Shown: one piece after another, positions 1,737 through 16,164 of the stretch
Position numbering within the stretch: the first letter of the stretch is position 1
How the letters are laid out: the number at the start of each line of letters is the position of its first letter
Assembly (NCBI RefSeq): GCF_021028975.2
Contig: NC_059439.1
Span: 38,936,001-39,000,000, forward strand
DNA length: 64,000 nucleotides
Reading direction: 5' to 3'
From: Sphaerodactylus townsendi
Taxonomy: Eukaryota
Translations under genes and position numbers: made by a program
The notes under the pieces: model-generated
What the model was told of the DNA's origin: nothing
Seen by the model: the letters and a program-made list of their open reading frames with translations, nothing else
Databases searched by the model: none

Positions 1737-4301
1737 CTCTGAATTCCGGCATGACGTACAGGTTGTCCATGTAAAGGTTTCTTCCTTTCCAGGTGCTGTA
1801 GGTGTAGACAGACAGGACGTATCCAATGAGAGTGTGACCTGTGGGGCAGGAAGATGTCATGGCACCTGTGACAGGTGGCGGAACTCGGGCACCCAGCAAA
1901 TGGAACATTGAATCGTAATCCCCCCGCCCCCCCCAAAAAAAAGTTCTTTGTCTCTAAGGTGCTGGTGGACTCCACTCTAGCTAAACTGGAACATTTGTCC
2001 CATAATACTTTTTATTAATTTCCTTCTTTAAAAAAACGCATTGGACATAAAACATACATGAAACCATTGAAACACATAAGACATCAACAAATATTAACAT
2101 GTAACAAATGACCCACACTTACAGTCACCCAAACATAAATCTATCCTACCCAACTACCCATAACCCAACTACCCATAACAATAACACATAATTCAACACA
2201 TCTAAATCAAATCAGTTACTTCACTATTCTTGGGTAAATTTATTCTTTAGCTTTAATAAACTTAAATATCTACACTATGCTACCTTATTTTTCATTCCAT
2301 ATTTTTAATATTTAACCTGCAAATATACCTTGTATTTCATAATGCTATATGTCATTCATATTTTAATTTAAATAAATTTCTTTTCTTATCTAGGCCGCTA
2401 AACTGGAACATTTGTAAAAGGGAAACGCTCCCCTTCCTTCCCCCATCAATTCAAACTGATTGGGCTACGCTGATGCTCACTTCTCGCCCTACCTACCCCT
2501 CAGTTCTGTCCCCAGAGGCCTCCTAAGTATGGTGTGTTCAGGGGAGACCGCTCCCCCCCTCATTACTCTTCCCACGGGGCCCTGTGAAGAGGAGTCAGGT
2601 ACTCCTATGCAAGCCAGCTCTCTCTCTCTCTCTCATCCTGGCTGCAGCCTTCAGTCGCAAGACCCTCCACATCTGTGCAGCAGGCCGAAATCCAGCAGGT
2701 GCAGCTTCCCCTCCCGCACGGTGGTTGAGTTCCTGCTGGCTCAAGGGAGGCAGTCTGGACACAGGTCCCCACAAGGCCCCAATTACCTTCTTTGCTTTTT
2801 TGTTGTGGGGGAACTTCGGCTACAAAACACTCGAATCTGGGATGTTCCCCAAATCCAGCCTTCATCAGCTCTGGGGCAGAAGGAAGAGCAGAGATGTTAG
2901 TCTGGATGACACAAGCATTCCTGTACAAGTGACAGGGCACATGGGAAGGGTGCCAAGGGTGGGGGGGAAGCATTAAGGGCTTGTGTTGTCAGGAGTATCA
3001 CAGTCAGGAGACATTGGCACAAGTGATGTTGCTCTTCGTTTAAAACTTTGACTTGTGTGCTGCTCAGGGTAGGAAAGCAGGCTGGGTCAGGGGCCGGCCT
3101 TGTGCAGGATCCCAGCAGAAGTCCCAGTGGAGAAGACCTGCCCCCGCTCCAGTCCCAGCAAAAGGGTTATGGGCCCAGAGGCACCGCGCCACGCAGCCCG
3201 TTTACCTTCCTCGCTGGTTCTGATCTCGTTCTCAGGAATCTTGTAAATGACGGCAATCTCCTGCAAGAGGGTGGAGGCTCAATGTGAGAATTCGCAGGTA
3301 TAATGGCACCTATTCCACCCCCCACCCCCAAATCACATACCTCTTCAGCCTCAAAGTGCCTGCTGTGGTTGCCAGCAGGGCTGGTTCTCTGGGCCAAGGG
3401 GGCAGGTCAGCCCAAGAGATTTTGGCAATCTTTGTCCCTCTTTATCCACATTAATGGAGGGGGGGCAATTCCTGCAAAACTGCTTCTACAGATATCTCAA
3501 AAAAACCCTCCCCATTTCTGCTAAGAAAACCTCATCACGCTGGCAGGGGATGATGGGAACTGTAGTCCATAACACCTGGCGGGCTGCAAGTTTGACACCT
3601 ATGCCAGAAGAAGCCTCCCTCCCCCCAGCTCTGCAAAACTGCTTCTGCAGAGATCTCAATCCCCCCACACACACATTTCTGCTAAGAAAACCTCATCCCA
3701 GACTGAGCTCATGATGAGACATAGAAACATGAAACATAGGACTGGAAGGGACCTCAAGGGTCATCAAGGCAACCCCCCCCCCTGCATAATTCAAGAAATT
3801 CACAACTCCCTCCCTCCCCCACCCCCAGTAACCCCTGCTCTATGCCCAGAGGAAGGCAGAAAACCTCCGAGATGTTTCTCTATTCTGCATTGCTTAGACC
3901 TCACCTGGAATATTGTGTTCGGTTCTGGGCACCGCAGTTCAGAAGGCTGGAAACCGGACTTTCTGGCTCTATTGGTTTTATTCCACGGCAGCTGGGAGGT
4001 GGACCATGAATCCTGGGCTCCAGCTCCAGGTGTCAAACTCACAACCCTCCAGATGTTATGGACGACAGTTCCCATCATCCCCTGCCAGCATGATGCTGGC
4101 AGGGGATGATGGGAACTGTAGTCCATAACATCTGGCGGGCCATGAGTTTGACACCTATGCCAGAAGAAGCCTCCCTCCCCCCAGCTCTCCTCTCCTCCTG
4201 CCCCACCCCTCCCTCCCTCCTTCCTTCCTTCCTCTCACCTTAATGAGCCGCATGATGTCCTTGAGATCCTTGGGGGCACAGGCACGCACAGCGAAAGCCA
4301 T
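1737..4301 (-). CDS. SAT2-like GNAT N-acetyltransferase, divergent paralog A (partial: exons 1-4; exons 5-6 not found, presumably left of the window)
   Basis: Exons 4301-4239 (MAFAVRACAPKDLKDIMRLIK), 3260-3206 (EIAVIYKIPENEIRTSEE), 2870-2787 (ELMKAGFGEHPRFECFVAEVPPQQKSKE), 1838-1737 ([34 protein letters not shown]). All junctions GT-AG; sizes 63/55/84/102 in frame and matching the SAT1/SAT2 exon layout; YSTWKGR is SAT2-type. Confidence 0.88.
1980..2415 (-). mobile_element. AT-rich retroposed insert (L1-like 3' end) with 19-bp target-site duplication
   Basis: GCTAAACTGGAACATTTGT at 1980-1998 and 2397-2415 flanks a 398-bp AT-rich segment ending AATAAAAA on minus. Confidence 0.65.
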
Positions 4302-13330: not shown

Positions 13331-16164
13331 CTTTGCCCTCTTGGCGATGCCAGCCGAGCAAGTTCTTGATGGTTTGATGGGAGAGGAAGGGGGGGGGGAC
13401 TTTTGGAGGGCCAGGGAAATTGGGGGGGCTGGGGGGGACCGAGGGCGGGGGCAGTCCCGGAAGAGCACTTCTGCCGCGTGCCGACGGGTCTCTCCCTCTT
13501 CCCCCCACCAGGAACTGGCCGAGTTTGAGAACCTGTCCGAACAGGTCAAAATCAGCGATCAAGGTGGGGCCAAAACTCCCGGGGCAGATTTGGGAAGCGA
13601 CTCACCTGCTCACAAAGTCTGGAGTCCCAACTCAATACCCGACACCCCACCCCACCCCACCCCCGACCCCAGATCAGCCACGGGGGTGGGGGTGGCTCTT
13701 CTCAGTTCGTGGCATTTATTTTTATTTATTTATTTATTATATTTATATACCGCCCCATCCCCTGAGGGCATCTACTCCCCCCTCCCACCCTGAGTGCTAC
13801 AATAAGTTAATGGACTAGACAAACAGAGCGGGGTGTGTGTGTGTGTTACGGGGCACCCCAGATTCTGCCCTGCCGGGACAGGAGCCCCCCCCCCCCATCA
13901 GATCTTCTGGAGTTGCCCCATCAGCATTCGTTCATTCAGTTGGCACAGAAAACCCCAGTGCGTGCCACTTTGATTGCCAAAGTCTGGGAGAGGGGCGGGT
14001 GTCTGTCAGAGTCTGTCCTTCCTGATCCACTTTTCCTGCCCTCCTTTCTCCCCCCCCCCCACATGCCCCTTTCTCTCCCTCCTCCCCACACAGATTTTTG
14101 TGAAGATGGGTTTGGCAAGGACCCCTTCTACAAATGCCTGGTGGCCGAGGTGCCCCCGGAGTGCTGCAGCCAAGATGGTGAGTGATGTCCATATTCCCTC
14201 CCCAATCGCAGCGTGGGGAAGACAGCCCGCTTTGGCTTCCTTCAGTGGGCCCCAACAAGGGTGGGCTTATCCAGATGAGCAGCCCCCTCCCCTCAACAAG
14301 ACCGGGGCCAAGAATCCCTCGTGGCAGAGCCCAGAGTGGCGCTCTCTGGTTGTCCCGTGCCCTGAAGATATTTGTGAACTGCAGCGCCATCGGGGCAGCC
14401 CTGGGTAAGAAAGACCTCTGGGCTGGGGGGTGGGGGAGTTGGGGGTCCCTGAAGACAGGGCTGCAGGCTGCGGGGTCTCCTGGCCCCCTCCCTCCTGGGG
14501 TCCTACAAAAACAAATCTACGTTTCTCTGTTTCTTACAGGCCACACGATCGTCGGCTACGGCCTGTATTTCTTCACTTACAGTACCTGGAAAGGAAGGAA
14601 TATTTATATGGAAGACCTCTACGTGATGCCAGAATTTCGAGGTATTCAGACTCGGGCGGAGGACATGGGGGGTGGGTGGGAGTGAAAAGGCCAGTGGGAA
14701 TTAGCAGGAACCGTCACAGAAGAGGGGGTCGGTGTGTTCTGAGCGGTGGGGAGGGAGCAAACGTGGACAGGATAGGCCACGTTCCATGGCTGGAGACAAG
14801 ATGCTGGTAGGGGGGCCGGGAGGGGAACTTCTTGTGCCCACAGAGACATCTTGCAAAGCCGTTCTCTCTGTCGCTTGTCACAGGAAAAGGGATCGGGAAG
14901 CAGCTGATGGGGGCCATTGCTCAGGTAACCGTTTCTGACTTCTGTCCCCGCAGTTTGTTGTTCCTGTGGGGAGGGGTGGGGAGAAGACGGACCTCTAACT
15001 AGTTTGCAAGTAGTTCCACCCTCAGCCTTGACCCAGATGGCCCAGGCCAGCCCCATAGGGTCAGATCTTGGAAGCGAGGCAGCCTCAGCCTTGGGGAGTA
15101 TTGGGATGGGAGGCCCCCAAAGGATTCTGGCAAACCACCTCTGCCTTGTGCCTTCAAAACCCTGCAAGGTTGCCATGAGTCAGCTGGGACTGGACAACAC
15201 TTTACACCAGTGATGGCGAACCTTTTCGAGACCGAGTGCCCAAATTGCAACCCAAAACCCACTTATTTATCGCAAAGTGCCGACACGGCAATTTAACCTG
15301 AATGACTGAGGTGTTAGTTTAGAAAAAACGGTTGGCTGCAAGCCATGCGTTACTCGGGAGTAAGCGTGGTGGTAGTCGGTGGCTTTGCTTTGAAGCAACC
15401 GTGCAACTTTTCCAACAAGTGAATCACGACCCTAGAAGGGTTTACTCAGAAGCAAGCTCCATTGCCAGCAACTGAGTTTACTCCCAGGTAAAGGATCGCA
15501 CTTTAGTTCTTCACAAGAAAGTCAGTGGGGTTTAACAGCGTTTAACAGGGTTGCCTACACTGCTTCCCCAAAACTAGGTCTTATGTTTAATACCAATAAT
15601 CAGGCCCAGTGGCCCAGGCCAGCCTAGATGTGTTGGGGGGAGTGGGTTTGTGCATGCCCACAGAGAGGGCTCTGAGTGCCACTTCTGGCACCTGTGCCAT
15701 AGGTTCGCCACCACTGCTTTACACACACTCGTTCACACACCGAGAGCTTTCAGGGAATTTCACTAGAGGGAACAGAATCGACTGGAAGAAGTTGTTTGGC
15801 GAGCAGGGGATGCAACTCTCAAGCGTGGCCCCAGCCCCGCCTCCCTGCTGGAGTCCTGGCTGCCGCCCCCCTCCCTCCCAGCCCCCCTTTCCTCACGGGC
15901 CCCCTTCCCTGCAGCCCCTGCCTCGTTTCCTCAGCCGGCTCCCCTGCTTTCTTATCCCCGCAGGCCGGCTTGGAGCAGGGCTGCACCCAGATGAGGTTTG
16001 CAGCACTGGATTGGAACCAGGCGGCCATTGACTTCTACCTGCACCAAGGGGCTGTGGATCTGACGGCCACGGAAGGCTGGCACTTCTTCCGCTTTGAAGC
16101 GGACGCCATGCGAGGGCTCTCCCAGGGGGAGCCAGGAGGCGACCGAGTCCCCCCAGACACGTGA
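12951..16164 (+). CDS. SAT2: Diamine/thialysine N-acetyltransferase 2 (SSAT2), conserved copy, 181 aa
   Basis: Exons 12951-13016, 13512-13563 ([17 protein letters not shown]), 14094-14177, 14540-14641 ([21 protein letters not shown]), 14884-14924, 15964-16164 ([22 protein letters not shown]). Sizes 66/52/84/102/41/201; closely matches recalled human SAT2; CpG-island 5' end; ATTAAA at about 16630. Confidence 0.93.

Follow-up and report, generated by a model that had tools for sequence, protein, structure and literature searches.

Three genes of the SAT2 family, which we will refer to as A, B, and C, lie within positions 1737-16164 of a 64,000-nucleotide (nt) stretch of DNA from Sphaerodactylus townsendi (NCBI RefSeq assembly GCF_021028975.2, contig NC_059439.1, positions 38,936,001 to 39,000,000 of the forward strand), this whole stretch being referred to as the window. 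The gene models were built from a six-frame listing of open reading frames (ORFs) and from motif searches; all frames are open, and every internal exon of the three genes is bounded by an AG acceptor and a GT donor. Gene C is located on the + strand (12951-16164) and its six exons encode a protein of 181 amino acids (aa). Gene B is also on the + strand (4688-10823; six exons, 172 aa), and gene A is on the - strand, where it reads from 4301 down to 1737 with its exons 1-4 inside the window (Table 1). The original prediction for this locus, viz. at least three SAT-family genes in about 16 kb with preserved exon sizes and open frames, is borne out by these models. The sequence motifs upon which it was based are also all present, namely ELAEFE, YSTWKGR, MEDLY, and LDWN in C, EAASFH, YCTWSGH, FGEDLY, ANWN, FRGKGIG, and DFY in B, and EIAVIY, MDNLY, and the extra codon of exon 2 in A. 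The residue encoded by this extra codon was found in all proteins of the A clade, including that of the turtle.

Exons 5 and 6 of gene A, for which the sequence to the left of the window had been proposed as the place to look, are both present there and intact. They were located on L004 (GCA_021028975.2, CM037628.2), the locus of the protein P0032, which matches the reverse complement of window positions 1-14301 with 0 mismatches. Neither of these exons was found by tblastn in bases 1-1700, and tblastn searches with the three models revealed no further SAT-like exons in the whole 64-kb window. It had also been suggested to look for further copies in the left-adjacent region, and none was found at the left-flank locus.

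Table 1. Positions of the exons of the SAT2-family genes A, B, and C and of the interval between A and B (window coordinates unless L004 is named).
Feature	Position	Strand	Length	Remarks
A exon 1	4239..4301	-	63 nt	ATG at 4301; MAFAVRACAPKDLKDIMRLIK; GT donor; same as start of P0032
A exon 2	3206..3260	-	55 nt	One extra codon; EIAVIYKIPENEIRTSEE; AG/GT
A exon 3	2787..2870	-	84 nt	
A exon 4	1737..1838	-	102 nt	Pfam GNAT match on exon ORF
A exon 5	87-127 nt left of window base 1; L004 14389-14429		41 nt	Intact
A exon 6	1241-1417 nt left of window base 1; L004 15543-15719		177 nt	Intact
A/B interval	4302..4687	unstranded	386 bp	Between divergent start codons; candidate shared promoter
B exon 1	4688..4750	+	63 nt	ATG at 4688
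B exon 2	7295..7346	+	52 nt	EAASFHKALDQVKTTPE; His at SAT2 position 28
B exon 3	8764..8847	+	84 nt	
B exon 4	9961..10062	+	102 nt	YCTWSGHILFGEDLYVLPDFRG; Cys82, Phe90, Gly91, Glu92, Asp93
B exon 5	10493..10533	+	41 nt	KGIGSGLLAKAAK; acetyl-CoA loop
B exon 6	10647..10823	+	177 nt	Including stop; R126, NWN, FY140, DHW
C exon 1	12951..13016	+	66 nt	95% identity to exon 1 of gecko orthologs; GC-rich 5' region
C exon 2	13512..13563	+	52 nt	
C exon 3	14094..14177	+	84 nt	
C exon 4	14540..14641	+	102 nt	
C exon 5	14884..14924	+	41 nt	
C exon 6	15964..16164	+	201 nt	Including stop; R126, LDWN, FY140, EGW

RefSeq models already exist for all three genes. The window model of B is identical to P0141, 'thialysine N-epsilon-acetyltransferase-like isoform X1 [Sphaerodactylus townsendi]', and exons 1-4 of A are identical to residues 1-101 of P0032, a 'diamine acetyltransferase 1-like' protein of S. 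townsendi. For C, the RefSeq model P0070 (isoform X1, 232 aa) has a non-homologous N-terminus of 85 residues, which is read from the GC-rich stretch at 12400-13400; the 181-aa model of C presented here aligns end to end with the 181-aa orthologs from geckos. The enzyme family is thus a known one, and A and B represent subfamilies of it that have been annotated but not characterised.

The family relationships were examined with full-length queries, consisting of P0141 for B, P0032 for A, and the ortholog P0002, which stands in for C. Their scores with the Pfam family PF00583 (Acetyltransf_1) were 55.0 (B), 54.5 (A), and 66.6 bits (C ortholog), the gathering cut-off being 20.7; single exons on their own score slightly under this cut-off. 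The best match in the PDB was in each case human SAT2 (SSAT2; 2BEI), with 210 bits for the C ortholog, 151 for B and, marginally, 118 for the A ortholog, and the corresponding phmmer E-values were 2.5e-61, 4e-43, and 5.5e-33. SAT1 (SSAT1, spermidine/spermine N1-acetyltransferase; PDB 2B3U, 2B4B, and 3BJ7), a GNAT-fold protein that forms an intertwined dimer, scores below SAT2 for B and C and about equally for A (117 vs 118 bits); it has D82-P83 where the reptile genes have S/C82-T83. AlphaFold2 models of the monomers had a predicted local distance difference test (pLDDT) score of 88.6 for B and 86.7 for A. In Foldseek searches, the top matches for both of these models were to SSAT1 with template modelling (TM) scores of 0.89-0.92, the score to human SSAT1 being about 0.9, and SSAT2 was matched at 0.82-0.84. 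All three proteins are predicted to fold like SSAT enzymes. Look-ups in the ESM Atlas added nothing beyond 'SSAT/GNAT family'.

To compare the rates of non-synonymous and synonymous substitution (dN/dS), the coding sequences of orthologs were spliced from their loci under exact-protein guidance. Between Sphaerodactylus and Eublepharis, dN/dS was 0.25 for A (bootstrap 95% interval 0.15-0.40), 0.25 for B (0.14-0.43), and 0.16 for C (0.09-0.29), the bootstrap maxima were 0.51-0.53, and comparisons with Gekko kuhli agree with these values. The ratio, which had been proposed as a check upon the two paralogs, is thus not near 1, and A, B, and C are all intact and under purifying selection. A pseudogene status of A or B is rejected on the basis of the intact orthologs and these ratios.

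Both A and B are widely distributed among reptiles. Proteins of the A type, which are 173 aa long, were detected in six gecko genera, Pogona, Anolis, Phrynosoma, Lerista, and the tortoise Chelonoidis. Proteins of the B type were sought by an exhaustive HMMER search with B exon 6 and then by a word search with the B-type protein of Podarcis; they are present in more than 10 squamate families and in six turtle genera. The squamate matches include lacertids, Rhineura, Hemicordylus, Elgaria, Salvator, Varanus, agamids, iguanids, and snakes, and the turtle matches include Terrapene, Trachemys, Chrysemys, Gopherus, Pelodiscus, and sea turtles. No birds, crocodilians, or amphibians were among the A or B matches, these searches being limited by shared words or by clustering in such a way that absence from these groups, or from mammals, is not established. 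In the maximum likelihood (ML) tree, A and B each formed a strongly supported clade (bootstrap/Shimodaira-Hasegawa-like approximate likelihood ratio test values of 100/99 for both) and they branched together with support of 99/85; C grouped with turtle C and the SAT2 of fish (97/91). The stem branches leading to the A and B clades are long (0.40 and 0.37, respectively) in comparison to that of C (0.09), and the branches within the clades are short. In the free ML tree, the A+B grouping is the sister of C plus fish SAT2, and the mammals lie outside of them.

Because clades A and B each hold squamates as well as turtles, both of the duplications are older than the split between these two groups, and the tandem duplication that gave rise to the three-gene cluster A-B-C took place before the two lineages separated. 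The expansion is thus not lineage-specific in the sense initially proposed, which is contradicted both by the presence of turtles and many squamate families in the two clades and by the A-B-C order seen in a tortoise. An origin specific to geckos is ruled out by the orthologs from lacertids, iguanians, snakes, and turtles. The layout in Eublepharis is A(-) B(+) C(+) lectin(-), which matches the window and retains the head-to-head arrangement of A and B. In Gopherus flavomarginatus, the order A, B, C is also retained and all three genes are on one strand, so that A is in tandem rather than head-to-head with B. The left neighbour of A in S. townsendi is a Neur_chan (CHRNB1-like) gene (L004 19660-25719) and the right neighbour of C is an ASGR-like C-type lectin gene (window 18034-24009); since the SAT genes are enclosed by these two, the cluster consists of exactly three members. 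The placement of A-B-C between a CHRNB1-like and an ASGR-like gene is repeated in the second gecko and in the tortoise. The neighbours presumably correspond to the surroundings of SAT2 at human 17p13.1. Humans have a single SAT2 copy, and human SAT1 is X-linked and not at the SAT2 locus.

Two observations were made on the arrangement of the cluster in other reptiles. In Podarcis lilfordi (L003 4281-4355 and 10001-23793), C is preceded by an A-like exon 1 in divergent orientation, and exons of B are absent between the two; species of Podarcis do possess a B-type protein, and the cluster is rearranged in lacertids. In sea turtles, the RefSeq models P0051, P0125, P0126, and P0154, each of 299 aa, consist of an A-like half fused to a B-like half, and they are probably due to read-through of tandem A and B genes on the same strand.

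The roles of the residues that are important for catalysis and substrate binding were taken from published work. Tyr140 is the general acid of human SSAT, where the Y140F change leaves <5% activity, and Glu92 is a remote general base, the E92Q protein being defective (PMC4964394; PMC10416765); both of these catalytic residues were defined in SSAT1 (PMC4964394). In SSAT2, S82 and T83 bind the C-alpha amine of the substrate and R126 its carboxylate, acting from the partner subunit, and the S82D/T83A and R126C proteins are inactive; the roles in trans come from a predicted structure (bioRxiv 10.64898/2026.05.22.727066). In plant SSATs, the Glu-Asp pair touches ligands. No source was found for a structural role of Glu28 in cis or in trans. 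For the comparisons below, residue positions were assigned by reference to human SAT2 and mouse SAT1 through PDB alignments, and residues were counted in 10 species of clade A, 23 of clade B, and 17 of clade C.

The proteins of clade C keep E28, S82, T83, E92, D93, the RGKGIG loop, Arg or Lys at position 126, D131-W132-N133, Y140, and E152. Both S82 and T83 are present in all of these species and Tyr140 in 17/17, and position 126 is Arg in 8/17 (including S. townsendi) and Lys in 9/17. The fold and the approximate length (170-181 aa) of human SAT2 are common to A, B, and C, and C additionally retains its S82, T83, R126, E92, D93, and Y140. As every residue known to matter is kept, C is expected to be the canonical SAT2, i.e., a thialysine/lysine N-epsilon-acetyltransferase.

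The B proteins differ from human SAT2 by His28, Cys82, Phe90, and Gly91, all four of which are found in 23/23 species. In the same 23/23 species E92, D93, T83, R126, and G104 are all kept, and W132 and N133 are usually kept. The acetyl-CoA loop of B is RGKGIG as in C, and the Glu92-Asp93 pair is present in all B and C sequences. Position 85 is Asp in most squamates and Ser in S. townsendi, and position 87, where most squamate B proteins have lost the basic residue, is Pro or His.

The A proteins are distinguished from human SAT2 by Y28, D92, N93, E132, K133, and L140, and by an additional residue that follows position 30. Of these, Tyr28, Asp92, Asn93, Lys133, and Leu140 occur in 10/10 species (P0032 included) and Glu132 in 8/10. 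Gly104 is replaced by Arg, Gln, Lys, or Ser in 8/10 and is retained in S. townsendi, where the acetyl-CoA loop reads RGQGIG. Ser82 is found in 7/10, Thr83 in 9/10, and Arg126 in 9/10, and basic residues are present at positions 85 (K85) and 87 (R87). Glu28 is thus replaced in both paralogs (by His in B and Tyr in A), and both have lost D131. The view that A and B are intact paralogs with remodelled substrate-binding residues is upheld, the changes at known catalytic or substrate positions being fixed within each clade. The accompanying assumption that acetyl-CoA chemistry is retained stands for B, in which the loop and Tyr140 of the S. townsendi protein are kept, but it fails for A now that exons 5 and 6 are seen, with Leu140, Asp-Asn at positions 92-93, and Lys133 in 10/10. 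Due to the replacement of Tyr140 by Leu and the altered Glu92-Asp93 pair, retained acetyl-transfer chemistry is doubtful for A. It was also observed that residues 126-128 of P0032, encoded by A exon 6, are His-Met-His, and that His128 is shared by all clade A proteins, the canonical SAT2 proteins having Ala, Ser, or Gly at this position.

The interpretation that we favor, to which a probability of about 0.6 can be assigned, is that this locus represents an old and conserved A-B-C cluster of SAT2 genes in which C would be canonical, B would be active with a shifted substrate, and A would be weak or inactive. B most likely functions as an active N-acetyltransferase that depends on acetyl-CoA, and the distal end of its acceptor site would have been rebuilt once and then frozen. 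Its substrate is probably an amine that bears a carboxylate but is neither thialysine nor lysine. For A, the most likely state is that of an SSAT-fold protein with weak or no catalytic activity, which may have been retained because it binds a ligand or serves as a partner within the obligate SSAT dimer. It is less likely that A is an enzyme in which another device has taken over catalysis. Asp92 of A could still serve as a base.

A number of points weigh against this interpretation. The tyrosine is crucial in nearly all GNATs, but some work without it, and Mpr1 uses Asn (PMC4964394), so that A could still be active. Position 140 of B is Tyr in 16 species, S. townsendi among them, and Phe in 7 scattered lineages; because of the Phe140 in these seven lineages the mechanism of B may differ from the textbook one, and the recurrent change from Tyr to Phe gives a hint that the chemistry of B might depend less on that hydroxyl. 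In A of S. townsendi, Arg126 is replaced by His, which is unique among the 10 A-clade proteins. No transcript or protein support was found for A or B; none of the runs found to contain the locus was an RNA run, the reads examined being genomic contigs that extend through the introns, and exact-protein look-ups revealed no short spliced contigs encoding either protein. Every functional statement made here rests on inference from sequence. With regard to the upper age limit of the duplications, the approximately unbiased (AU) test does not reject a single reptile clade of A+B+C (p = 0.257). The tree was also constructed without SAT1, and its mammalian rows are aberrant isoforms on a long branch.

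It is also conceivable, although unlikely, that A and B form an asymmetric heterodimer, in which one composite site would be near-canonical and the other site dead. A would then give Ser82, Thr83, and Arg126 in trans, B would supply the catalytic residues, and in squamates both genes would be co-driven by the 386-bp divergent promoter. The pattern of retained residues in the two proteins is complementary, since A keeps the partner-acting S82, T83, and mostly R126, along with K85 and R87, and has lost its own catalytic set, whereas B keeps the catalytic set and has changes in the partner-acting residues. SSATs are obligate intertwined dimers in which both subunits contribute to each active site, S82, T83, and R126 act in trans in the preprint model, and the divergent start codons 386 bp apart make co-regulation in squamates possible. 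However, the trans roles themselves stem from the predicted structure in that preprint, and position 126 of A in S. townsendi is His. Furthermore, the turtle A and B genes are in tandem and not head-to-head, and the A-like exon 1 of Podarcis adjoins C with no B between them.

Another explanation, which appears quite unlikely, is that A and B are redundant copies of SAT2 that are maintained for dosage or by tissue subfunctionalisation and share the thialysine/lysine activity of C. The fold, the exon structure, and the locus are all common to the three genes, S82 and T83 are kept by A, and T83 and R126 are kept by B. However, the paralogs show only 39-45% identity to each other, their long stems (0.37-0.40 vs 0.09 for C) are followed by conservation inside each clade, and the fixed changes affect precisely those residues whose importance has been shown by mutagenesis, viz. 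Y140, E92, and S82.

A recent gecko- or squamate-specific expansion, in which both copies keep acetyl-CoA chemistry and a less acidic acceptor pocket accommodates new, less basic amines, is very unlikely and is already contradicted on age, as turtles hold both clades and a matching gene order. The loss of negative charge that had been predicted for the acceptor pocket is observed in part, E28 being replaced and D131 lost in both A and B and D93 changed to Asn in A, and B retains the P-loop and Y140. However, B keeps E92, D93, and R126, most squamate B proteins have gained Asp85 and lost the basic residue 87, Glu132 has been gained in A, and A lacks Y140 and is altered at E92 and D93. As B and A have gained acidic residues as well, the change in charge is not one-directional. 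Lastly, that A and/or B are decaying or unexpressed relics whose frames are open by coincidence fits the lack of RNA support but is highly improbable in view of the intact six-exon ORFs in dozens of squamate and turtle species, the dN/dS bootstrap maxima, and the confident fold predictions.

What appeared to be a young, lineage-specific burst is thus an ancient, conserved, and already annotated cluster, and reptiles hold two additional subfamilies derived from SAT2, both of which are old, under constraint, and unstudied. The catalytic tyrosine is missing from one of these, and in the acceptor site of the other a His/Cys pair is new and invariant; together they provide a natural experiment on how a small-molecule GNAT may switch its substrate or turn into a non-catalytic partner. 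Their presence also suggests that there may be acetylated metabolites specific to reptiles. Recent work has linked SAT2 to the metabolism of free acetyl-lysine and to protein stability (bioRxiv 10.64898/2026.05.22.727066). A precedent for lineage-level duplication and divergence in the SSAT family is provided by teleosts, with ssat1a, ssat1b, and ssat1c in zebrafish and at least two ssat2 homologues in ray-finned fish; in that work reptiles were unsampled, and no paralogs without the catalytic tyrosine or with the H28/C82 signature were described (PMC3543422). The squamate and turtle proteins are otherwise represented by automatic RefSeq models designated 'thialysine N-epsilon-acetyltransferase-like' or 'diamine acetyltransferase 1-like/2-like', which are names only, and our literature search found no papers with a functional or evolutionary account of clades A and B. 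A protein named 'diamine acetyltransferase 2-like' is listed in a chicken liver proteome (clade not assigned).

The divergent interval between A and B has a GC content of 0.59 and an observed/expected CpG ratio of 0.27, and it is not a CpG island. The corresponding values for the region 12400-13400, at the 5' end of C, are 0.70 and 0.59. This contrast in base composition suggests a housekeeping-type control for C and a tissue-restricted control for A and B.

Some additional features of the window and of the searches may be noted. Bases 1-1700 consist mostly of a tandem array with a period of 166 bp (582-1214, and more generally 1-1300; 3.8 copies, 95% matches), which lies in intron 4 of A and whose units resemble short interspersed elements; related units recur at about 3450-4200 and at 18600-18800, and they have a very high depth in genomic runs. 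In a small sample of genomic contigs from related organisms, exons 3-4 of A differ at positions 1755, 1787, 2807, 2821, and 2847, the five differences being, in this order, V96I, K85R, P61Q, one synonymous change, and E48K, with no stops or frameshifts listed. The exhaustive search with B exon 6 also revealed a two-domain SSAT protein from thrips (P0048, 331 aa). Two proteins from ENA metagenome contigs, P0043 (1427 aa) and P0046 (1071 aa), contain 16 and 13 SSAT-like stretches, respectively, and such multi-SSAT proteins are either massive tandem arrays that gene callers have joined into one model or eukaryotic SSATs that truly have several domains.

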